Shown one piece after another: positions 1 through 44,056 of a stretch of 64,000 nt of DNA. The translations under genes were made by a program, and so were the position numbers. The notes under the pieces were generated by a model. It was not told the DNA's origin. It ran no database searches and saw only the letters and a program-made list of their open reading frames with translations. The stretch covers positions 5,580,001 to 5,644,000 of the forward strand of contig OZ218953.1 of assembly GCA_965112735.1 (NCBI GenBank), given 5' to 3'. The DNA comes from Phaeosaccion multiseriatum. Its lineage: Eukaryota > Protista > Ochrophyta, other classes. Position 1 is the first letter of the stretch; each line of letters starts with the position of its first letter.

Positions 1-2605
1 GCAGACAGACAGACAGAGAGAGAGGGGTGTCCAGTGCAGCCAAGCAGCGGAGAGGAGGAGGAGGAGTAAGAGGAGTAAGAGGAGGGAGGAAGGAAGGTGA
101 ACGAGACCCCCCCTCAATCCCCTGAAAGGGCATGTTGCCGTATTTGGCCAAGCAAGGCAATCAGAGACAAGTCTTCTTCCCTTCCATGCTTCACTCTTGC
201 CCCCCCCCCTCCTCCCCTCCCCACCTCAGTCCTTTCTTGCCCGTGGGCAGCTTGAGCATGACTGCGAAGAGCTCGTCGATCAGCAGGGAGCGGTGCCGTG
301 TGTAGTGCGCGAACACGGCGTGAAGAACCCCCACTGAGCACAGCTGAAGAGCGTGCAGCTTGGATGCCTCAGCCGCCGAGGACTGCGTTATCAGCGTGGA
401 CTTCAATTGAAGGCAAGGGAGGGGGAGGTGGGCGGGCGGGCAGGCACGCAAAGGAAGCAGTGAGAGGGAGTCAGCGTAAAAGGCCACCCTCCAGAGACCA
501 GGCACATCGGAGGGCAGGTGGAGAGGCCGAGCACGGAAGCGTGGGAAAGCCTTGAGATTGGGGTAGAGCCTAAAGATGGGTGGAAATCTAGAGCCTACTG
601 AATTGGAGGTGGGAGGGGGGGAAATATACCATTATGCCATTGGGAGCATGCGTGTGGAGGAGGCCAAGTGCCCCTTGAGGCACTGCACCGCAAGGCTCAA
701 ACTCACACTGACCTGCATGGTGGAGCACAGAGTGAGTATGTGCCTGTCCTGCAGCTTCTTGCACACCAGGCCCTCCAGCTTGCCCACAAGCTCGTACACC
801 TGGGGCAGCGTCTTCAGCAGCTCCCTATGGCAACAACAGGACAGGGCGTAGGCATAGGGTAGCGCATGCATGGTCAGGGGCACGCCACGGCTCGGTGAGA
901 AGGGTCAGTAGATTGAGCTGGCCATTTCGACAAAGAGGGGCAAGCAAAGAGCTTGGGGGGGGGGCTCCCGAGTCGGGGCGGACGAGACAGACTGGGGAGG
1001 AAGGACAGGAGAAGAAGGGGCAGCAGGACTGGCTCGGCATCGCTTCTTACTTGCAGAGGGGTTTGACCCAGCCCGTCACCTCGTCTGCTTTGGTGGCCTT
1101 CTTCCTCTTCTTGCTGCTGCTGGCCGCCTTCTCCTTCCTCTTGCCACCGCTGGGGGCAGGGCTCGACAAGACTCCTCCCCCCTTCTCCTCCTCCTCTTCC
1201 TCTTCGCCTCTGGCACTAGCCCTGGCTGGAGCAGCTCCTGTACAGAGGTCTGCAATGCACTTCTCGAGTCTGGCGCTGCTCTCGGTGGGGTCGAAGCAGT
1301 AAGTGAAGTGCTGCGAGAGGTGCTGCTTAGTGAGGCCGATGACGTCGTCGATGAGGTCCTCGTCCAGCAGCAGGGGGTCCACAGAGGGGGTGGACAGCAC
1401 CATCAGGGCAGAGGTGGCGGCGAGCAGCGACAGCTTCAGGCAGGCCACCTCTTCCCTGAGAGCGCTCACCCCTGTGGAGGACGTCCCGTTGCTCGCGTGT
1501 TGGGCCTTGTGGGTGGGGTGCCGAGAGGCAGGGCAGGGCAGGTCAGGACGGTTGGGGGGGGGGGAGGCTGAAGAAACCCACCCACATCAGATCATTGCCT
1601 ACAATTACTTTCACCTCTCCTCTCTCTCTGACGGACCTGTTTGGCAGTGAGCTGGAAGAGGTCGATGCTCACCCCCACTCGCACAGCCCCCCCCAGGAGA
1701 CGCATGAAGGGCGCCAAAGTCTCCACTTTTACCTGGTGCAAGCACTTGAGGCGTCGCAGGGTGGACAAGCGTGCAAAGGCGCCCTGCAGCTGCTTGTACG
1801 ACAGCAGATTCTTCCTACTCGCAACCGCGTCGTTGTCTCTACCGCCGTCTGGGACGTGCTCTGTGCCATCGTACTGCCGGGCCTTGGTGCTCTGCCTCAC
1901 TTCACTGTCCTCGCACGACCCCACCAAGCCGTCGATGTAGTCTCCAAACTGCTCGATAACGTCCTTTGCGTTCTGCACGGCCTCGGAGCCTCCTTCTGAA
2001 GCTGCTGCTCCCCTTCCCTTGCCCCCAGCCCCTGAGGGAGCAGCCGCTACGGAAGCCTCCTCGTCCCCCCCAGCAGACGTCGTTCGCCGTCTCTTCTTCC
2101 TCCCCTTCCATACCCTGCCCCCCCACGCATCGCCGTCCTCCTCTTCCTCATCGGCGCCCCCTTCCTCCTCCTCTTCTTCGTCCTCCTCTTCTTCTTCCTC
2201 CTCCTCTTCTTCGTCTTCTTCTTCTTCTTCTTCTTCGTCCTCCTCCTCCTTGCCCCCCTCTTGGTCTTCGTTTTCCGCGCTTCGCAGCCGCCGCTGCTGC
2301 AGAGTATCGCCTCCATCCTGCAGGATGATGTCCTGAAGCTCCTCCAGATCGACTTCTTCCCTGTCTCCGTCCTCGTAGGTGATGCCATACACCGTCACCG
2401 TTGGCGCCTCTTGCTCGCTCCCCGCTGGAGCTTCACACGCAGCCACGGACAGGTCGTAAATGACAGACCCCGTGTAGAACTCCCCATCTGCGAACAGCTT
2501 GGACACCTTCTTCTTCATGTAGGGGCTATCGAGACGAGCCCCCTCTGGCGGTGCAGAGTCCAGGCCGTCCTCCTCCTCGTCCATCATGTCGACACTCTCA
2601 CTCAT
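1..2605 (-). CDS. SCC2: Cohesin loader NIPBL/Scc2 (Nipped-B-like), 5' exons; the gene runs off the left edge. It has an N-terminal Tudor-like domain and an acidic tract.
   Basis: Spliced exons give ALMVLSTPSVDPLLLDEDLIDDVIGLTKQHL..CFDP and LQLCSVGVLHAVFAHYTRHRSLLIDELFAVMLKLPTGKKGLR. These match conserved NIPBL segments of the form ..EDVIERVI..TKFHL..QYDP and LQL..VFSRYEKHRQLILEEIF..LARLPTSKRSLR. Exons lie at about 2605-1646, 1471-1051, 800-682 and 408-225, with GT-AG introns. Confidence 0.85.
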
Positions 2606-28679: not shown

Positions 28680-30031
28680 ATCCCCAGCTGCTGCTCCTGC
28701 CGTCGCCCGTAGGCATGGAGCTCACGCAGCGCCTGCGCAAAGATGGAGGCGAGGGCTCCATCCATAGCCGCTGCGCTGGACTCGCCTTGGGTGGGCAGCC
28801 TCATGTCTACAAGCCGCCACACAGAGCTCCGGATGGAGTCACCGTCAACGTCACCGCTGCTGGAGCCAGAGCTACCGCCCACGCTGAGGGGGAAGGGTGA
28901 ATATAGAGGGGCGGGGAGAGACGCGGTGCTGGTGAGGCGGAATCGTTAGTTTCGAATGGTGCTGTAGAATAGGTTGGGGTGGCAAAGGCAAAGCGCGAAC
29001 CAAACGGAGAGCGGGTCGAGGTACTATCGCTTGTACCGCCCAAAGAACGCAGAGCAGGGAGGGACGAAATACAACACAAAAAGTATCACGAAAGGACACC
29101 ACCATTTTCGTACCTCGCGCCCTCACCGCAGAGAAGAAAAGGGTTCACTGTGGGTGCGGCCATCCCGAGGGGCTCGCTGTTGAGGAGGCGGCGAAGGTGG
29201 AAGCGCAGGAGCGAGCTCAGGAAGCCCGCAAGGCGCGAGCGGAGGGGCGACTCCAGCGCCGCCACTCTACTCCACCCCGCCACGCCGCCCGACATGGACT
29301 GAGACGAGTCAGGGGAGGAGAATGAGGAGGGGGGCCTGCACGAGTACACACAGCAGAGCTCTCGAAGATAACAGGCCGCCGCTGAAGTCACGTGCGTCTC
29401 GGACACCTCCGAGCCCATCTGCCGCGCAGCCTCTACCACCACTCCGGCCAAGCTGAGCCCCGTCCCTGCTACTGCTGTATCACCAACTCCTGCGTCTTGT
29501 ACGGTGTGAGTCGGTGGAGCGGCGGCTGCTACTACCGAGGATGACGAGTCTGTTGATGACTTAGCGACCATCACAGCTATGGAGGGGCTCTGCTCGCTCC
29601 TGCTCGCGCTGCTCTCGCTCTTAAGCGCACTCCTGCGCGTACCCGTCGCTGCCCCTCTGCCGCTGCGGGCAATGGTCTTCAGAGCTCGCATGAACGTCAG
29701 CAGCGCGTCCTCCCCCCCCTCCCCTCCTGCAAAGTGTCCAGCACGACTGCTGACGGCCCTGCCCTTAACAATATCCTCCTGCTCAATGACCCTCGACAGC
29801 AACTCTGCGCACCGCTCGGAGGTTCGCCGCGAGGCCGGCCTGGAGTCGACAGGAAGCGCCACCGCCGACAAGTCAAAGCTACAGAAGCGCACCTTGCCCA
29901 GGGGGGGGGCGCTACTCTCCGCTCGAAGGCTCTCCACCGCGGCGGCCTCCGCTGCCATCATGGCCTGGAGCATCGGGAGCAGGGTCACCACCCCCGTCTG
30001 CTCCTGTTGCCCTTGCTGCTGTATCACCAAC

Positions 30032-30067
<36 letters not shown>

Positions 30068-30218
30068 TGCTGGACGAGAGCCAGGGCGGAGGCGAAGACC
30101 GCTGGCAGCACGGCTCCGGCAGTATGGCGATATTTGAGGCGGGCGGCCTGCTCCATGATTTGCTGCCCCGAAGGGACTACAGGCAAGGGAGGGCGCGACC
30201 AAGAGGAAGCGCCTTGTC

Positions 30219-30257
<39 letters not shown>

Positions 30258-30872
30258 CTCCCACGCCTCTGTGGCCATAAGCCGTCCGCAGCACTTGTAA
30301 CTCGCGCTCTACACGCAGAGCCTCGGGCTCCATGGGCTCAGCCTCGAGCAGGGGGGGATTGGCTGCAGAGGCGGACGTGTCCGGCCCGGCTTTTGTCTGT
30401 CCTACCAAAAGCCCTCCTGGGGTCTTTCCTTGCTCTGCCCAAAGAACGCTCGAGCAAGAGTCCTGCGTGCCGCCCATCGACTCCACAACAGGGACTTGGC
30501 TGGCATCTGTACCACTGCTGATGCCGCTGATGCCGCTGATACTGCTGGTGCCGCTGGTGCTGCTGGTGACCGGCAAAGGGGCGGCAACTGCGAGGGCCTT
30601 CTCGTCAAGCTTCCGCCGCCTCCGTCCGGCAGCGTCTTGCGCTGCGAGGGCGCGTAAGTTGGTGCTGCTGCTGTTAGTGCCCTTACCACCACCCCCTTGC
30701 ACAGCCCGAGCCGCAGCCTTGCGCTTAATGGGCAGGGGAGACGGCAGGCAAGGCCAACCGGAGGTGTGTGAATGTGTGAGGGCAGAGGCCACCGGGGCGG
30801 AGGATGGCACGCACTTTCGCTTCTTGACCACCTTCCCCCGCTCCTCGGGGATGGGCACGAGGCCTGGATGTC

Positions 30873-30913
<41 letters not shown>

Positions 30914-31862
30914 ATCACCAATTGCCCCCTCTGAGCACCCCCGGAGGCGCCTCCTTTCCCTCCCTGGCCCTGACGAGCTGCAGCTGCTGGCTTCGACCCA
31001 CCTCTCCCCCCTGCCGCTGTTTTGGCGGTGGCCTTATTCGTCCTCCTCGCCCCCTGCGTCTCGTCAGTCGCCTTGTCAGCCTTCCTCACTTCTGCCACAC
31101 CCCCTCCGGCGGTTTCAGCTGTTGCTCCGGGTACTGCGGAGGTCCCATGCGCTGTCACCGCCTCCCCGTCTCTTGCTGCTCTACCTGCTCCTCCCTTCTG
31201 CGGAACATTCCGACTCCTCTTCACGCCCCGCTCCCGCTCCCCCCCCCCCTCCTCCTCCTCCTCCTCCGCCACGACTTGCTCGTTGTACACCACGCGGCCC
31301 CTCCGACTGATCCTCAAGCTCCGACGACGGAGGGATTGGTCCCTCTTCTGCACCTGCTCTGTCATCTTCAGAATCTGTGCCGAGATTGCCGCCGCCTCTC
31401 CCCCCCCCTCTCCCTCCCCGCCTCCCTCCCCTGCACTTTGTCCATCCTCTCCGCTGCCCCCCCCCCCCCCCTTGCCGCCCCTGCTACTACAACTACTTGT
31501 GCGGGCCTCACTTCCCCCCACCACCCCTGATTCTGCATCGCCTGCTTCTGCTTCGTCGTCATCATCCTTCAGGAAATCATCGTCAATCACGAGCATCCCC
31601 TCCCCTGCTCCTGCTGCTGTATCACCAACTGCTGCTGGTGCTCGTGCTGCTGGTGCTCCTGCTGCTGGTGCTCCTGCTGCTGGTGCTGCTGTGGTTGGGT
31701 CTCCCCCAGTTTTTGGGCTGTGATTCCACTCTCCAATCCTGCCGAGTCCGATTCCCAGCAACATGTCGTCGTTCTGCGGCATGCCGAAGTCGTCAGGCAT
31801 GGCCACCTCGTCCAACTCAGAAACATCCATCAAGTCCTCCGCTGCCGATATGTCTCCTCCTC

Positions 31863-31893
<31 letters not shown>

Positions 31894-33897
31894 ACCCTTT
31901 CCTCCTCCTTCGCTCCCCTCTTCTCCGTTCCTTGCCAGGGACAGCGCCTGCGTGTCAGCCTTTGCTTCCAACGCTGTTGCTGCTTCTGTTGCTGCCGCTG
32001 CGTGTACTGCTTTTGGTGCTGCTTTTGCTGCTTCCGTTGCTGCTGCGGCTGTTGCGACTACTGGCCTTTCTTCGTGTGTGCAATCTCCAGCACCTTCGCC
32101 ATGCTTCTCTTCCGTCGCTGAGACGGGGGCTGCTGGGATGAGACTCCGAAGCAAGGCGTCTCCCTGCAGCTCCTGCCCCAGGTTTGCTGACGTAAAAAGC
32201 TCCTTCAGGCCGCGCGCTAACGTCTCTACCGCCGTCTCGCCCGTCTTCGTTCCTTCGTCCATCGCTGTAGCGGAGGTGGCGGTAGCCATACCTTTCCCCC
32301 GTTTGCTGCCTCTGCCTCTGCCTCTGCCTCTGCCTTGCTCTTGACCCTCGTCTTGCTCCTTGGTGGCGCAGCCCCCTGCCCCGCCCTCCCCTGCAATTGT
32401 GTGAGCGACGACGGCCCTCAATCCCTGCTGTAGCGCAACAAGCTTGTCCTGGACACATTTCACCTCCTCATTGGCCCTCGTTAAGGCAGCCTTGTCCTTC
32501 TTTCCCTTGGCCTTGAGAGCAGCTGCGCTTTCCTTGAATCGCCGCTGCGCCGCGTCACTCTGCTCTTTCAAACAATCTACTTGGGCGCTCAGCTCGCCGT
32601 TCTCGCGGGTAAGAGCAGCGGTTTTGAACCCTTGCTGCTCTTGTACTTGCTGCTGCCTCTCTGTCCCCTCCTCCCGCAGTCTGTGTGCTTCTTGCAGCGC
32701 TGTGGCCAAACCTGATGCCATGTCCCTGCCCTCAATCTCCATGGAGTCCACACGGGCCCTGAGGGCGGCATTCTCCTCTTGCAGACTAGTCTGCCGTCGA
32801 ACGAGTTCCCTCCTCTCCGCCTCGGCCTCTCCAGCAACCGCAGCAACCGCAGCTTTGGTCTTTGCCAGCCCCTGTTGCTCGTCTCGCTCTTTCTCCTCGC
32901 GAACAATCGCCGCCTCCCTGCCCAACCTCACGTTCTCCGACTCCAGCGTCTCGATCTTGCTCTGAAGCTTCTGCACCTCAACTTCCGTCTTTTTGGCCTG
33001 CTGTAAAGTTTCCTCCCTTTGAGCACAAGCCCCCTGTACCTCTCCCACCAAAGCCTCAGCTGCCAGCTTGGCCGTCTTGGTCTCGTGTCTTGCGAGCGCC
33101 AGCTCGCTCTCCAAACCAGCCACACGCTCCTCCAAAGTCTTGATCTGTTGTATCGACGCCACCCACTTCGCCTGATGTTGCTGTTGCTCCTCCTCCTGTT
33201 GCTTCGCTTTCTGCAGCTCCTCCTGACGCTCTTGCTTTTCTTGACTGGGCTCTTCCTTATTCCGGGCGGCTTCTTTCTTCTCTTGCTGCTGCCGCTCCTC
33301 CGTGCAGCTACCGCCGCTCTCCGCCTTTCTTGGATGACCGTCATTGCCCCTATCTATCCTTCCGGCGTCTACCCCCCTAACTCCTGCTACCCCTACTACC
33401 CTATGGTGTTGTTGTCGTTGCTGTTGCTGCTGTTGCTGCTGTTGTTGTCTATATTTCTGCTTTTCCTGTTGCTTATGTTTCAAGTCTGCGAACAGTGAAG
33501 GCTGACCACAGCTGTTCGTGCCCCCGGCTGGGGATAGTGGCCCCGAATCTTTCCCATCGGCACTGCTGCCACCACCGCCACCCCCATTCTTCCCGTCTTT
33601 CCTCGACGCGTGGAGAGAGGGGACAGAAAACTGCGCCAGCGCTTCGCCTACTCCAGACGTAAGAAGACCACTCGGTCGAGCCTTCCCCTTTCTCGGACTT
33701 CTTCGGAGCTGCTGTTGCTGTTGCTGACCTGCTGAGCATTCAGGGAACTCCGTTCTCTGCTTGGTTGCCGCTACTTCTTCCCTATTAATATCCTTTACCC
33801 CCAGGGCCTTCTTGCCACTGCCTGCCCTGCCACTGCCTTCGCTGCCCACGCCCCCCTCCGGAGCTGCTCCTGGTCCATCCGTGAAGATGAACGGCAT
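27481..33897 (-). CDS. Large hypothetical protein: N-terminal coiled coil, long low-complexity (polyQ/G/A) middle, helical C-terminal part; about 4 exons
   Basis: 1603-aa ORF with a heptad-rich region (IKTLEERVAGLESELALAR..LQSKIETLESEN). Downstream exons at about 28883-28321, 28185-28074 and 27845-27481 join in phase through GT-AG sites. No family recognised. Confidence 0.7.
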
Positions 33898-34038
33898 ACT
33901 CAGGAGGATCTCTCTCTATTCTCTCTCTTGCTTATATAAAAAAATCCTCTAACGGTCGTTCCGCCGACACTCGAGAAGATGGCACTGGATGGATGGCTTG
34001 CTCATGCGTTGGGCATACCATTGGACACCCCAAAAGGG

Positions 34039-37000
34039 ATGAAGCGGGCCAAGGCGTCAGGAGAGGCCAAGGTGGTTGGTCCACCCCCTGTGCTACTGCT
34101 CTTCGCCGCGACGGCATTGCTACAAACGGTCCATGTCACGGCCTTCAGCCTTGTTCATTCTCCCCCTGCCTCTGGTCTGGCCCGGCGCAGCAGCAGCGGG
34201 AGCACGCGCAGGAGCAACAGATTGCGGGGTGAAGGGAGTGGGTGGGGTTCTCCTTCATCGTGTGGCTGTGGGAGAAAAAGTTGCGGCAAGAGAGGGGGCA
34301 GTCAGCAGCAGTACGGCTGGAGAGAGGAAGGTCTGCTGTTGAGGAAGTCAACTGCTCGTGATGGAGAAGAGGTGCAGGATGGCAGTCGGAAAAGGCGCAG
34401 AGGAGACTCCAGCAGCAGGAGAAGTCGGCTCGCTGACACGAGGCTGGCTGCGGCGAGCACTCCAACAGGCAGCGCGGGGGGGGGGGGTGACAAGGCGCGA
34501 GGCTTAACAAGGAGAGACTTGCTATCCTCTGCCGCCCTGGCCGCCACTACGGGCACTGCCGCTGCAGCAGTGCTCACGGCTTTCCCTCAAGTATCCAAGG
34601 CAGCAGCGGCCGCAGCGCTAGGAGGATCCGGCTCCCCTGCCTCTGGATCTTTCAATTACGTCCCTCCCGAGCTGGTGTGGACCCCCGTGAACGAGGCGGG
34701 GCAGGCAGCGGCCAGCGGGACGGGGACGTACAGCCCGCGCTTCACAGCCTACTTGGCCCGATTCCTCCTGAACTTCGACCCCCGCAGCATGTACTGGTGG
34801 GAGCAGCAGAAGAGAAAAGTACCCCGAGACAAGGCCGAGGCACTGGCCAGGGAGCTGATGGAAAATGGCTCCGACGCGGTCTTTCGAGCGCTCGATCTCA
34901 ACAAAGACGGCGAGGTGGACAAGGAGGAGTTCTTCGTGTCGCTGAGCAATCAGAAGAGCGCCTTTAGTGGCTTCCAAGCCTCCGTGAGCTTTGGTAAGTG
35001 CAGGGTCCGAGGTGGGCGTAAGTGTTCGCGCCTCGGGCATGCCTCGTTTTGTTGTCTACACTGTTCGTCCTCCGCCCTCCTCGAGACTGCTTTTTGTCGG
35101 TGATGTCTTTTTATGCTCCTGAGAATGAATGCAAGTCGATTAGTCCATCCCTCCCTCGATGAGTATCGTCCTCCTCTCCTGTTTCTCCTCTCCTCTTCTC
35201 TCCTCTCCTCTCCTCTCCTCCCCCCCCCCCTCCCGTCCCCTCCCCGCGCGTCTCACGCCAACTCACTCACTCACTCGCTCACTCAGGCCTGCGCAATTAC
35301 CAAGGGAAGGACGGCACGCAACGCCTCTTCACCCTGCTCATGGACGAGTTCGGCCGCTCTCTGTCCAACAAGCGCCAGATCGCGCTGCTCTTCTCTCTGC
35401 TGGACTCCGAGCAGCCCACGCAGCTCATCAAGAAGCTCATCGCCGAGACGGACAACTCCTCCGTGGAGTCGTACAAGTAGGTGCTACTGAGTGAGTGAGT
35501 GTGTTCTGGCTAGAGGGGCTAGGTGGTTATGTTTTGTGTGCTACTGAGTGAGTGAGTGTGGCACGTCAGCGAGAGGCGAGGGAGAGGCGAGGGGGGGAGG
35601 GACTTGTGTTCGTGCTGGAGCTCTGGGAGAGGAGAGGAACGAACAGCGAGGGGCTATGGCATATACCCATATACCCATAAACTAAGTAAAGTATCCTTGT
35701 CCCCACGTCCCCACTACCCTTCCCTCCCCGCCCCCCGCCCCCCCCCCATCCACTGCCATCTCTCTCGTTTCTCTTAGGGTTGTGAATGGAGGCTCTGGCT
35801 ATTCTCCCCGGAAGCCCCCTCTAGTGACTGTGGAGAAGCCTCTGTACAAGGCGGATCAGGCCACCGCCAAGTGCACTCTCAAGCCCACGGGCCGCTTATT
35901 CCGCATCAAGGTAGGAACCACAGAGGGGGGCTTAAGTATGCTTAAGTATGGCCGGTATAGTCTGTCCCCTTTCTGTTTTTCAAGGACGAGTGGGGAGCAG
36001 GCCAGCGCGAGCCGTTGTGTTGTGCCTTGGGGAGGGAGCAGATGACAGAATAAGTGAAGAGAGCACTTGGACCCTGGGCCGGCTCCGAGGGACGAGGACA
36101 CCATCCAGGGTGACCACAGGGAGTACCACCAAAGTGCCACCAGATTGGTCGCTCCCCGCCCTCTCCCCCACCTCTTGCTCCTTTGGCATGATGTCACTTC
36201 GCTACCATCCTGGCCGTTTTCCCGATGCCGTCTTGGTCACTCTCTTCGCTGTATTTATGCACACCGTGCCGGGCGTCCCTGCACTTGCCAACACTTGCCT
36301 GGCCGCTGAGCATGCCTCTTCCTCTGTACCTCCTCTGTCTCTGTGTGCACCCCCCCCCCCCAGGTGCTCAGCGGCGGCAAGGGCTACACCAGCCCCCCCG
36401 AGGTGACTGTTTCCAGTCCGGCGTGGGGCAGAGGCGAGTCTGCCAAGGCCATCGCCACCATCAAGGGCGGGCAGGTGGCGGGCATTGTCCTGACCAATCA
36501 GGTGGGGAGGGGAGATACACAGTAGTTAGCAACCCTGTACATGTTTGGTCTTAGATCTCTTGTTCTCGTGTGTTCGTCTTGGTCCGCTCTCTGTCTGCTG
36601 ATGCCCTTGCCCTGCCTTGCCTCGCTGCTGTGCTCTCTCCTTCAGGGAAAGGATTACAGCCCCGATGACCCGCTCATTGTCTCGATTGGGCTGCCCACCC
36701 CCAAGGACGCCAACGTGATTCAGGACCTTGAGTCGGTCATGGGCGGTGAGTTGTGCGTTGTGCGTTGGAGGGCACCACTGGGAGTCCGCTTGCTGGTGCT
36801 GCTGGTGCTGGTGCTGGTGCTGGTGCTGCTTCTTCTGCATTCCCAAACTGCCTGTCTCCGAGGCTTTGGACGGTGGCGGATTTGTTTTGTTGGGCTCAAG
36901 TCTTTCCCCTTGGACTCATCGTTCCTTCCTCCGTGCCCCTCTTTGCCTCTCTCCCTCCCTCCCACCCGCCAAATCGATTGCCCACACCACACCAACACCT

Positions 37001-39789
37001 GTCACAGGCGCATCTGCAGAGGCTGTCTTAGAGTGGTGCGTGTCCTCCGTGGAGGTGGTCGACCCCGGCTCAGGCTATGCGCACTCCATCCCGCCCAAGG
37101 TCACTGTAGAACCCCCCCCGGACAGAAACGAGTTCGCCAACTTCGGCCAAGCCGCCAAAGTGGAGGCCGTACTGAGCGAGTCCCCGGGGGGCCTGATCCT
37201 GACGTCATGGCTGCCCACGCCCACCATGAACCAGGAGGTGACCACTCTGCTGCCATCCAACCTGGTGCCGTCGTACGACCCCTGCCTCGGCAAGTTTTAC
37301 ATCTCTCCGGTGCCCGTGCAGGACCCCAACTATTGCGTGTACTTTGCACAGGACAACTTTGAGGTGTGTATGACCAACATGTGTGCGTGTGTTTGCTTGT
37401 GTACCGTCGTCTCGTGAAGAATGGCGAGCGAAAACTCGACTGTTGAATGGTGGCCCCTCGCTCCGCCCTTTAGGCTCTCCCCTCTTTTCTACTGTCACTC
37501 ATTCGCATTGGGGGGAAATACCCTTACTCCAAGCCGTGGACTTACGCACCCGCACCCGCACACACGCACCCACCCACCCGCGTCCTCCTCCCGTCGTTGT
37601 GCTGCTGTATCACCAACTGCTGCTGCTGTTGCTGCTGCTGTGCGCAGGTGTACCCGTCTGAGAAGATGAGTCGCTACTTCAGCTTCCTGGACGGCCCTCG
37701 CGCCCGCTACCCCGTGGAGAAGGAGCGGCAGCTCGACCTCGGCGTGTTCCTACGCTTTGCGGCCTGCGGGGCGGTGTGCGGATCTGCGGCGCACGCGTTG
37801 CTCGTGCCCATCGACGTGGTGAAGACTCGGATGCAGAGCGAACCCGAGAAATACAAGGGCATGGTGGGGGCCTTTAAGACTATCGTCAAGGAGGAGGGGA
37901 AGGAGGCCTTTTTGCTCGGCGCGGTGAGTGAGGGAGGGAGTGAATGCGTTGTGTGGCGTCGCTCGTCGCTCGTTACCGTGTGTGTGTCCTCTTTCCTCTG
38001 TTCTCTGTTCTTTGGCCCTCCCTTCCGTATGTCCACCCTCCCCCCCTGATGCGATTCCCATCCCCTGATGCCATACCTCACCCCGGCCCTGTCGCTTGCC
38101 CCATCCCGCCTCCTGTGCCTGGCACACCTTTGCGCGCGCACACACACACACAGGGTGCAACGACAGTGGGGTACATGCTCTACGGAGGCTTCTCCTTCGG
38201 ACTAACAGAGTTCTTTAAGCGGAAGTTCGTGGAGTTTGCAGGGCCCGGTCCTGCCGCCCTTTACCCTGTGCCCATCCTGCTGCTTGCGAGTGCCTGTGCC
38301 GCCACCTTCGCAGCCACCGCGGTGACCCCCTTCGAGGCCATTCGCATCCGCACAGTGACTGTGAAGGACTACCCCAAGTCGCTGGTCGGGGCTCTCAAGC
38401 ACGTGAGTAGAGGGAGGAGGGAGTAGAAGGAGCAAAGGGCGGAGGGTGGGGGGCGTGTGAAGGGATGAGGAGCGTTTATGGCAGAGAGCGCCAGGAGGGA
38501 GACAGGGATCTAGCCCTAAGCGTGAGGAGGGAGAGAGGGCCCTAACCTAAGCGTGAGGAGGGAGAGAGGGCCCTAACGTAAGCGTGAGGAGGGAGAGAGG
38601 GCCCTAACCTAAGCGTGAGGAGGGAGAGAGGGCCCTAACCTAAGCGTGAGGAGGGAGAGAGGGCCTTCGCTCATTGGCAGGAGTGTGCTCGAGCTCGCGA
38701 CGCTTTGCCACTCCAATTCGTTGGATCCCTTCTAATCGCTCCCTCCCCCCCCCCCCGCCTCTGTTTGTCCCTCAGACGCTCGAGACCGGCGAAGTGGGAG
38801 ATCTTTTCTACGGCGTACCCGTGCTGCTCCTCGCGGAGATTCCCTTCATGATGACCAAATTCGCGGTGTTTGACTTCACCTCCAAGCTTACGTACTCGCT
38901 CTTCCCCGTGGCCGCCGACTCTGTGACGCTGTCCCTGCTCGTGTCGTTGGTGAGCGGCATGATCGCCGGAGTGATGGCGAGTCTCGTGTCGCAGCCCTCG
39001 GACACCATCATGACGGAGGTCAGCGAGGGCGGGCATGAGGCGGGGGAAGCGGAGGGAGGGGAGGCAGGGGCTGGGGCAGGCAGGGGGGAGTACGAGGAGT
39101 CGGGCATCGAGAGCTCTTTGGTAGCAGCGGCAGAGTCCAAGGTTGCAGCCCTCGCACTCGCCGCCACAGAGGCGGAGGGGGGAGGAGGCGGGGAGGAGGG
39201 AGGATTGCTCGCAGAAGCGGCTGCCGAGGCGGAGGCGGCGGTGGCGGCGCTGGCACTCGCGGCCAAGGGAGGCGCGGAGGAAGAGCTGCAGCCCGGCCTG
39301 GCCCTCGCAGCCGTCAAAGGCGTGGAGGAAGCGGCATCTGTGGGGCAGAACGGTCTCGTCGATGAGGAGGGGGGGCTGACAGCAGCAGCGGCACCAGCAG
39401 CAGCAGCACCAGCAGCAGCAGCAGCGTCAGCAGCATCAGCAGCAGCGGCGGCGGGAGATGCGACAAGCTCTCTTTCCGCACCCGAGGCCCCTCCCGTACC
39501 GCAGGAGTTGCACAAGCCCGGCGGTGTGAACATTCCCGAGGTGGCGGCTCGGCTCATCAGGGAGGGTGGAGGTCCCTTAGCGCTCTACAGCGGAGCCCTC
39601 CCGCGGTCCATCAAGAGCGCCGTGAACATCGCGGTGCAGTTCTTCCTGTACGACTTCTGCAAGCGTGTGGCCATGGTGTCCCCGGACGACATCAAGGTGT
39701 TCTTTGACGTCATGTCCGGCCTTGAGGTGAATGATCCGGGCCTCGCATCCAAAATCATCTCGGGGGCCGCCAATATCCCCACCCCGTGA
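34039..39789 (+). CDS. Mitochondrial-carrier-family (phosphate-carrier-like) protein with a plastid presequence, twin-Arg motif, EF-hand and GSGY beta-repeat N-terminal extension; multi-exon
   Basis: Signal peptide + TAFSL; LTRRDLL; EF loop DLNKDGEVDKEE. Carrier signatures PIDVVKTRMQ, PFEAIRIR and QPSDTIM. PiC-like motifs GY..G.F.FG..E.FK, IP..M.KF and VSQP. An alternative start lies at 33979. Confidence 0.8.
38515..38665. repeat. Intronic 31-bp minisatellite (CCTAAGCGTGAGGAGGGAGAGAGGGCCCTAA) x~5
   Basis: Near-identical head-to-tail copies with no spacers. Confidence 0.9.

Positions 39790-40522: not shown

Positions 40523-44056
<3,534 letters not shown>

Follow-up and report, generated by a model that had tools for sequence, protein, structure and literature searches.

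A candidate plastid carrier with a twin-arginine-type presequence and a large N-terminal domain in the ochrophyte Phaeosaccion multiseriatum

In this study, we analysed a window of 64,000 nucleotides from the ochrophyte Phaeosaccion multiseriatum (assembly GCA_965112735.1, contig OZ218953.1, positions 5,580,001 to 5,644,000 of the forward strand; positions below are those of the window unless another contig is named). It holds a nuclear gene of nine exons and about 1,135 codons on the plus strand (34039-39789), encoding a three-part presequence, a helical block with one EF-hand, four beta repeats and a C-terminal carrier domain of the mitochondrial carrier family. The product is probably a plastid-targeted carrier of the thylakoid membrane, whose N-terminal domain (N-domain) would be exported to the lumen by the twin-arginine translocation (Tat) pathway. 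A further-reaching proposal, which we regard as possible but doubtful, is that proteins of this kind, with a large lumenal domain exported by Tat and a six-helix mitochondrial-type carrier inserted behind it, would be the first such polytopic transporters of the thylakoid and would represent the missing thylakoid phosphate (or metal/anion) exporter of secondary algae of the red lineage, gated by lumenal Ca2+ in the branch of brown algae, xanthophytes and eustigmatophytes.

Presequence and Tat machinery

The N-terminus of the predicted protein is composed of three consecutive elements:

34039-34143, plus strand: endoplasmic reticulum (ER)-type signal peptide, residues 1-35, with a basic n-region, the hydrophobic core VLLLFAATALL and the predicted cleavage site ..HVTA/F
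34144-34506, plus strand: Ser/Arg/Gly-rich, transit-peptide-like region, about 120 residues long (composition read directly; the Ser/Arg-rich stretch extends to 34500)
34507-34602, plus strand: Tat-type lumen signal, consisting of T-R-R-D-L-L (34507-34524), an Ala/Thr/Gly-rich hydrophobic region (h-region) and SKA/A

Phe36 (34144-34146) occupies position +1 after HVTA in the sequence ..HVTA/FSL, and signal peptides followed by Phe were also observed in homologues (Nannochloropsis ..TPATA/F, P0003 ..AST/F, P0051 ..GQS/F, Chaetoceros ..ARA/F). An ER signal peptide with Phe at +1 is a hallmark of ochrophyte plastid import, and the predicted signal peptide, the Phe and the transit-like region together form a bipartite plastid presequence of the ASAFAP type. 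The twin arginine (34510-34515) lies in the exon 1 context G-L-T-R-R-D-L-L and is followed by a 22-residue Ala/Thr/Gly-rich stretch that ends P-Q-V-S-K-A/A, with A188 encoded by 34600-34602. A preliminary description of this DNA had listed the signal peptide with TAFSL, the Ser/Arg-rich region, LTRRDLL, the hydrophobic stretch ending in SKA-A and a conserved-looking ..WW block, and all of these were recovered in place; none of them is a product of chance.

The presequence alignment covered the 85 residues that precede the conserved block in all family members with enough N-terminus. The twin arginine occupies a single aligned column pair in 30 of 35 non-redundant homologues (<80% mutual identity), which answers the earlier question of its conservation; among the remaining five, three carry RN, RQ or RA and thus keep the first Arg, one is truncated and one is apparently mis-modelled. 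The preceding residue is Ser or Thr in most homologues, the h-region is Ala/Gly/Thr/Leu-rich across the family (mean Kyte-Doolittle 1.32 over 16 residues), and the processing sites are AxA-like (SKA/A here; AQA, ASA or AEA types in other members). The sequence upstream of the twin arginine is unalignable across the homologues, and the transit-like region gave no alignment between them. Because (S/T)RR, h-region and AxA stay fixed while the presequence around them drifts, the segment is best read as a putatively functional Tat signal.

The HCF136/Ycf48 orthologue encoded by the same genome served as a control. Proteins of this family are lumenal and use the Tat pathway in plants. The presequence of the orthologue (MKRS..LLSSVHVDA/FAP, a Ser/Arg-rich stretch, SRRGFM, an Ala/Thr/Gly h-region and AEA/A) has the three-part layout of the carrier gene, feature for feature. 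Components of the translocase are also encoded, with an intact TatC gene on contig 19 (183 bits) and a gene of the TatA family (TatA-like) on contig 2. Thus, the thylakoid and Tat interpretation of the preliminary description gains support from the conserved twin arginine, the HCF136 layout and the two Tat genes, although it continues to be a prediction from sequence. A PsbP-like protein was dropped as a presequence control and replaced by HCF136, since it has RQ instead of RR. This PsbP-family protein (G000:C10:1046762-1050175, L006, open reading frame 1486..2292, minus strand) combines a signal peptide ending ..TEG/FAP with the lumen signal T-R-Q-H-F-F, and a single Arg may be sufficient for some lumenal proteins of this alga. 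A second TatC-like sequence on contig 18 (G000:C18:56869-57482, minus strand, L004/L005) is interrupted by several stops when read in the standard code (TGA, TAG and TAA); it may be a pseudogene or else a mitochondrial tatC divided among frames.

The internal signal could also belong to a carrier of the plastid inner envelope. In that case, the RR/hydrophobic segment would be a stop-transfer sequence, an anchor or a relic, and the N-domain would reside in the intermembrane or periplastidial space or in the stroma. Most characterised carrier-family proteins of plastids are envelope proteins, including MCFc of Phaeodactylum (PMC12645085), and the Arabidopsis carrier TAAC has been re-assigned in part to the envelope (PMC5948301). 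However, a relic or plain anchor would not hold the twin arginine at one column in 30 of 35 diverged members, the segment mirrors the lumen signal of HCF136 from the same genome, and the h-region, at a mean of 1.32, is too weakly hydrophobic for a typical membrane anchor. Moreover, Tat components within plastids are known from thylakoids only. We know of no polytopic thylakoid Tat substrate, and this speaks for the envelope. Weighing these points, we consider an envelope location unlikely.

Gene structure and homologues

The gene model was assembled from splice borders, profile searches and comparison with homologues. The Pfam and NCBIfam searches were run exon by exon, and orthologues from the databases were used for the domain-level analyses. 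The exons are:

34039-34993, plus strand: exon 1, presequence, helical block and EF-hand
35287-35476, plus strand: exon 2, second half of the helical domain (YQGKDG.., RQIALLFSL.., QP..LIKKLIAETDN), GT..AG borders
35778-35910, plus strand: exon 3, GxGY beta repeat 1
36364-36501, plus strand: exon 4, GxGY beta repeat 2
36646-36745, plus strand: exon 5, GxDY beta repeat 3; below the size seen by tblastn and set by splice sites and by eye against P0002
37008-37363, plus strand: exon 6, repeat 4 and the conserved linker LLPSNLVP.YDPCLGKFY..DPNYC; 51-55% identity in tblastn
37648-37923, plus strand: exon 7, the YFSFLDGPRARYPVEKE junction, then carrier repeat 1 (PIDVVKTRMQ); Mito_carr E 3.6e-13
38154-38402, plus strand: exon 8, carrier helix 2 to helix 3 (PFEAIRIR); Mito_carr E 2.5e-6; 64-69% identity
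38776-39789, plus strand: exon 9, carrier helices 4-6 with the stop codon at 39787-39789; Mito_carr E 9e-12 in two stretches

All eight introns show GT..AG borders when read from the sequence. The plus-strand frame of exon 1 is open from 33979 for 374 codons and closes shortly past the GTAAGT at 34994. We took 34039 as the start codon; a second in-frame ATG, 60 bases upstream at 33979, may be the start instead and would add 20 residues. In tblastn, the exon 2 product is 54-59% identical to P0002, P0088 and P0003, and exon 7 is 67-79% identical to P0002 and P0088. These two proteins match the exons one after another, each in its predicted frame, with the short exon 5 as the sole exception, and P0002 holds the counterpart of exon 5 in its GQGYTEDDRVTVQIDPPPG segment. 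Exon 9 contains an insertion of about 170 residues (39030-39520), Ala/Glu/Gly-rich and of low complexity, in the third matrix-side loop of the carrier; in tblastn, homologues match 38773-39024 and 39520-39732 and pass over it. In Nannochloropsis members, an insertion is instead found in the second carrier repeat. The four public runs that hold this stretch all consist of DNA contigs containing introns, and apparent joints in their reads are repeat artefacts, coming from low-complexity intron repeats with non-canonical ends.

An exhaustive HMMER search over 1.84 billion representatives with the mature part of exon 1 (34501-34992) detected 76 representatives; the Y.P.F..YL.RFLLN.D...WW block is present in about 50. 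Full-length members were found in Chrysoparadoxa australica, Nannochloropsis oceanica, the brown alga Nemacystus decipiens, the haptophyte Chrysochromulina parva and the diatom Chaetoceros neogracilis; the homologue search in diatoms and brown algae that had been suggested earlier was thus successful in both groups. A profile search added members from Tribonema minus, Undaria, Ectocarpus, Ascophyllum, Scytosiphon, Laminaria and Cyclostephanos, with annotated full-length proteins among them. The family members nearest to this gene come from xanthophytes, Chrysoparadoxa and brown algae. All named members belong to plastid-bearing ochrophytes and haptophytes, and the matches include no oomycete or other non-photosynthetic name.

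The genome of P. multiseriatum encodes two paralogues. The one on contig 7 (G000:C7:1691610-1694918, plus strand, L021) has QSRRSLL, the repeats and the carrier. The one on contig 15 (G000:C15:~703000-707500, minus strand, L022) has a signal peptide ending ..TYG/F, followed by SDRREFV, YSEPFVAYLARFLL and the carrier; it is without the beta repeats, and its carrier is closer to canonical phosphate carriers. The RR signal is kept in all three family genes of this genome.

The preliminary description had assigned a carrier to 34039-34930. This range covers exon 1 only; the carrier itself lies 2.7 kb downstream in exons 7-9 (37648-39789, plus strand). It is conceivable that two genes were joined in error: exons 1-6 would then encode a soluble lumenal protein exported by Tat, and exons 7-9 would be a carrier gene of their own. 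The public runs being DNA only would leave room for this; in addition, unspliced read-through from exon 6 meets a stop after 18 codons, and some database models are split in this manner (P0001 with 362 residues; P0128 and P0129 with the carrier only). However, these short models look like fragments on short contigs. The full-length proteins of Chrysoparadoxa, Nemacystus, Nannochloropsis and Chrysochromulina are colinear with the window, exon by exon, in tblastn. A C-terminal Mito_carr was found in all nine scanned homologues of at least 700 residues, from eustigmatophytes, brown algae, diatoms and haptophytes, always behind the N-domain; the tenth scanned protein, P0026 with 568 residues, shows none. 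The junction YFSFLDGPRAR.P.EKE at the start of exon 7 is conserved and unbroken in the sub-clade proteins P0002, P0088, P0003 and P0087, exons 6 and 7 are in phase across a 284-base GT..AG intron, and the sole in-frame ATG of exon 7 (EKMSRY) would give a carrier that is devoid of a targeting signal. Because the full-length relatives are colinear over the exons and all long ones end in the carrier, a single gene for N-domain and carrier is strongly supported by the comparison. The idea of a separate N-terminal gene, raised in the preliminary description, is thereby ruled against, and we hold a false fusion to be highly improbable.

Carrier domain and N-domain

Mito_carr (PF00153) was detected in exons 7, 8 and 9 with 49.5, 27.6 and 45.0 bits (cut-off 22.3), and the orthologues P0002 and P0088 show three Mito_carr stretches (E 1e-41 to 1e-43). 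The carrier signature P-x-[DE]-x-x-[KR] is present in H1 (PIDVVK) and H3 (PFEAIR). In H5 it reads PSDTIM and has no basic residue, which is also missing in the aligned canonical phosphate carriers (columns 587-592). With the carrier domain of the closest full-length orthologue as query, the nearest named relatives are SLC25A3, Mir1 and proteins annotated as Cu/Pi carrier (30-38% identity, E ~1e-40). In a maximum-likelihood tree, the family and the phosphate carriers are split from three other carriers at 100/99, and the family forms one group at 95/93 (97% of bootstrap trees) with three sub-clades; the outgroup of this tree is small, with these three carriers, and rows without a recognisable first signature were excluded. 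The window protein keeps 50 of the 85 columns that are near-invariant in 21 canonical phosphate carriers, including the His of the first transmembrane helix (TM1) and the repeat-3 P-x-D-T motif without its basic residue; the lost columns include Lys, Arg, Glu and Asp (324, 349, 361, 365, 528, 649). Other genes of the genome match canonical phosphate carriers better, best of all a gene on contig 8 (E 6e-51), which is presumably the mitochondrial phosphate carrier. For this reason the carrier domain, as judged from the alignments, is a divergent extra paralogue of the phosphate-carrier clan.

The affinity to phosphate carriers could suggest a mitochondrial inner-membrane phosphate carrier, in which a mitochondrial Tat system exports the N-domain from the matrix to the intermembrane space. 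The resulting topology would suit a carrier as well, and the second TatC-like sequence on contig 18, with its standard-code stops, may be mitochondrial. However, the N-terminus does not resemble an amphipathic mitochondrial presequence, here or in homologues; it has the form of an ER-type signal peptide, whose hydrophobic core is long and which is followed by Phe at +1. The presequence is closely similar to that of the plastid HCF136, the named members all come from plastid-bearing ochrophytes and haptophytes, and other genes of the genome, with that of contig 8 in the lead, fit canonical phosphate carriers better. A mitochondrial location is therefore very unlikely in our view, and a plastid protein is preferred.

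The N-domain precedes the carrier and begins with the following elements:

34603-34993, plus strand: start of the mature helical domain, rest of exon 1, with the core block YSPRFTAYLARFLLNFD..WW (34729-34800)
34894-34929, plus strand: EF-hand loop DLNKDGEVDKEE, canonical, 12 residues, D-L-N-K-D-G-E-V-D-K-E-E

The core block, YSPRFTAYLARFLLNFDPRSMYWW at 34729-34800, is helical and conserved, and its columns Y, F, Y, L, R, L, D, W and W are near-invariant in the alignment. The EF loop proposed at 34894-34929 proved to be exactly there, and EF-hand_5 exceeds its Pfam cut-off (27.0 bits against 25.9; residues 280-298). The loop has ligands at positions 1, 3, 5, 9 and 12 and Gly at position 6, and it is flanked by helices in the AlphaFold2 model of an orthologue, where the inter-helix turn preceding it measures 4 residues. 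In exon 1, there is one loop only, and EF-hand pair profiles stay under the Pfam cut-offs. A feature search of exon 1 in a protein atlas returned EF-hand clusters only. The EF-hand sits in an insertion of about 38 residues that is found in one of the three sub-clades; besides the window protein, Heterococcus-like, Chrysoparadoxa, Tribonema, brown-algal and Nannochloropsis proteins have it (the last of these with Thr at loop position 6). Since the EF-hand is single and limited to one of three sub-clades, Ca2+ sensing, which is itself predicted from the loop, cannot be the core function of the family.

Exons 3-6 each encode one repeat of the G-x-G-Y..P-P-x-V-T-V type. The whole N-domain of the orthologue P0002, modelled with AlphaFold2 from a 25-row alignment (pLDDT 81.8, pTM 0.73), consists of nine helices followed by a beta-rich region made of the repeats; the helical domain of an orthologue modelled alone also has nine helices (pLDDT 87.2). 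With the whole N-domain, Foldseek gave no match against the PDB at E<0.04 (best 0.047), the best VIA Z of 5.0 came from a match to 76 residues of the T4 sheath protein gp18, and matches in the ESM Atlas reached TM values of at most 0.41, mostly with phage structural proteins including Uroviricota clusters. The helical domain alone gave only generic three-helix matches (VIA Z ≤6.6, Foldseek E>1). Neither model has a convincing solved relative, and the N-domain was not assigned to a fold. The repeats (35779-37170, exons 3-6) show a sequence relation to phage structural-protein repeats, and in a profile search they match proteins with Phage_sheath_1, Phage-Gp8 and T4 neck-protein domains (E 1e-19 to 1e-8). 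A Cys pair in exon 6 was not used as a sign of an oxidising compartment, as it is conserved in the EF-hand sub-clade only.

Proposed mechanism and comparison with known systems

We propose that the signal peptide directs the precursor into the ER-derived outer plastid compartment and that the Phe-led Ser/Arg-rich transit region would guide it through the inner plastid membranes to the stroma. There, the internal signal of (S/T)RR, a weakly hydrophobic stretch and AxA would engage the thylakoid Tat translocase, which would export the folded N-domain (about 480 residues, comprising nine helices with one EF-hand and four GxGY repeats) to the lumen. The six-helix carrier would then enter the thylakoid membrane with both termini lumenal. 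Its cytoplasmic-type face would thus look into the acidic lumen and the matrix-type face into the stroma, an orientation energetically equal to the mitochondrial one. As the carrier is a divergent relative of the phosphate/H+ (Cu/Pi) carrier, its likeliest job would be to carry phosphate, or else a different small anion or a metal complex, out of the lumen into the stroma, driven by delta-pH. A phosphate/H+ symporter in this orientation would move phosphate from the lumen to the stroma under illumination. Potentially, the lumenal domain is a regulatory or docking module, which might respond to lumenal Ca2+ in the EF-hand sub-clade. PHT4 and TAAC, the thylakoid phosphate and nucleotide transporters of plants, are reported to be absent from diatoms and brown algae (PMC5948301), and the role of a thylakoid phosphate transporter would therefore be vacant in these algae.

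Several points weigh against a Tat-exported thylakoid carrier. To our knowledge, though no search aimed at it was made, no described thylakoid Tat substrate has a six-helix membrane domain behind the exported domain, and therefore a second insertion step must be assumed for the six trailing helices. The twin arginine is not absolute, given the three homologues with RN, RQ or RA and the RQ of the PsbP-like protein of the same genome. Bacterial Tat-signal profiles score nothing in exon 1 (Pfam E≤1; NCBIfam E≤10), which is unsurprising because they model N-terminal signals of bacteria and the signal of exon 1 is internal. The EF-hand is unpaired, and two of the three sub-clades lack it (diatom, haptophyte and remaining clades). 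In view of the retention of only 50 of 85 columns and the lost charged positions, the substrate may be something other than phosphate. Finally, the public runs of this organism that hold the stretch are DNA only (n=4).

The mitochondrial phosphate carriers (SLC25A3, yeast Mir1 and Pic2) share with this protein the three Mito_carr repeats, the clan (100/99), the TM1 His and P-x-D-T. In contrast to them, the family forms its own clade (95/93), has 50 of the 85 residues with several charged ones replaced, and in this gene adds an N-extension of about 600 residues with plastid and Tat-type signals as well as the loop insertion of about 170 residues. The calcium-regulated carriers SCaMC/APC and aralar/citrin likewise have an EF-hand N-domain before the carrier, on its cytoplasmic-type face. 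Those carriers are mitochondrial proteins of the ATP-Mg/Pi and Asp/Glu subfamilies, with several EF-hands arranged in pairs. Here, a helical domain that is otherwise unrelated holds one unpaired EF-hand, the carrier resembles phosphate carriers, and the presequence is of plastid and Tat type; as expected in the preliminary description, the protein thus falls outside these subfamilies. HCF136/Ycf48 of the same genome has the same three-part presequence plan. Known thylakoid Tat substrates, however, are soluble or single-anchor proteins, whereas six membrane helices trail the exported domain in the proposed carrier.

Among transporters, PHT4;1 has a fold of the major-facilitator type, unrelated to the carrier fold. 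It does the job proposed here, moving phosphate across the thylakoid membrane for the stroma and ATP synthase (PMC5948301). Arabidopsis TAAC/PAPST1, reported in thylakoid and envelope, sets a precedent for the thylakoid membrane as a site of mitochondrial-carrier-family proteins (PMC5948301). It differs in being of the nucleotide-carrier subfamily, in lacking a Tat signal and lumenal domain, and in being reported from the green lineage only. Diatom KEA3 is a stramenopile thylakoid ion transporter controlled by an EF-hand and Ca2+; the EF-hand is missing from plant orthologues, and both Ca2+ binding and the functional need for it were shown (bioRxiv 10.1101/2021.09.06.459119). In contrast to the protein described here, KEA3 belongs to the cation/H+ antiporter family, no twin-arginine signal is mentioned for it (bioRxiv 10.1101/2021.09.06.459119), and its EF-hand stands beside a regulatory RCK domain and is tied to intracellular Ca2+, not to a lumenal pool. 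MCFc of Phaeodactylum (PMC12645085) was rejected as a member of the family, as it is an ADP/ATP- or BAC-like protein of about 40 kDa without the extension. The main texts of a diatom plastid transporter atlas and of an ochrophyte plastid proteome paper contain no such protein, the named members retrieved carry no annotation beyond hypothetical, unnamed or EF-hand domain-containing protein, and a description of the family was not found in the literature searched. Thus, carrier superfamily and targeting signal are known, while their combination and the putative lumenal domain appear to be new.

Ochrophytes and haptophytes, the lineages across which the family is conserved, contribute a large part of the photosynthesis in the sea. 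With three paralogues in this genome, the family offers a testable candidate for the exchange of solutes between the lumen and the stroma. If the proposed mechanism is true, Tat export and membrane insertion would cooperate on one chain, with a folded domain of 480 residues and six helices, and the clade-specific EF-hand would make this a second Ca2+-controlled thylakoid transporter beside diatom KEA3. The presumed lumenal domain is confidently modelled, without a solved structural relative, and shares its beta repeats with phage structural proteins. Nannochloropsis is genetically tractable, and the orthologues in this genus and in the diatoms Chaetoceros and Cyclostephanos make the family experimentally approachable.

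Further observations concern the surroundings of the exons. Intron 8 contains about five tandem copies of a unit of about 32 bases (..ccctaacctaagcgtgaggagggagagagggc..) at 38505-38670, and introns 1 and 6 contain CT-rich and CTG-rich simple repeats, at which the read contigs break. Upstream, a 1,603-codon open reading frame on the minus strand (29086-33897), with poly-Gln, poly-Gly, poly-Ala and coiled-coil-like stretches, is oriented head-to-head with the carrier gene. Its ATG is only 82-142 bases away from the two candidate starts of the carrier gene, which suggests a shared bidirectional promoter region. Downstream, the tail-to-tail neighbour on the minus strand (40526-40849) ends in NAD_binding_1 (E 8e-9), an FNR-type C-terminus.

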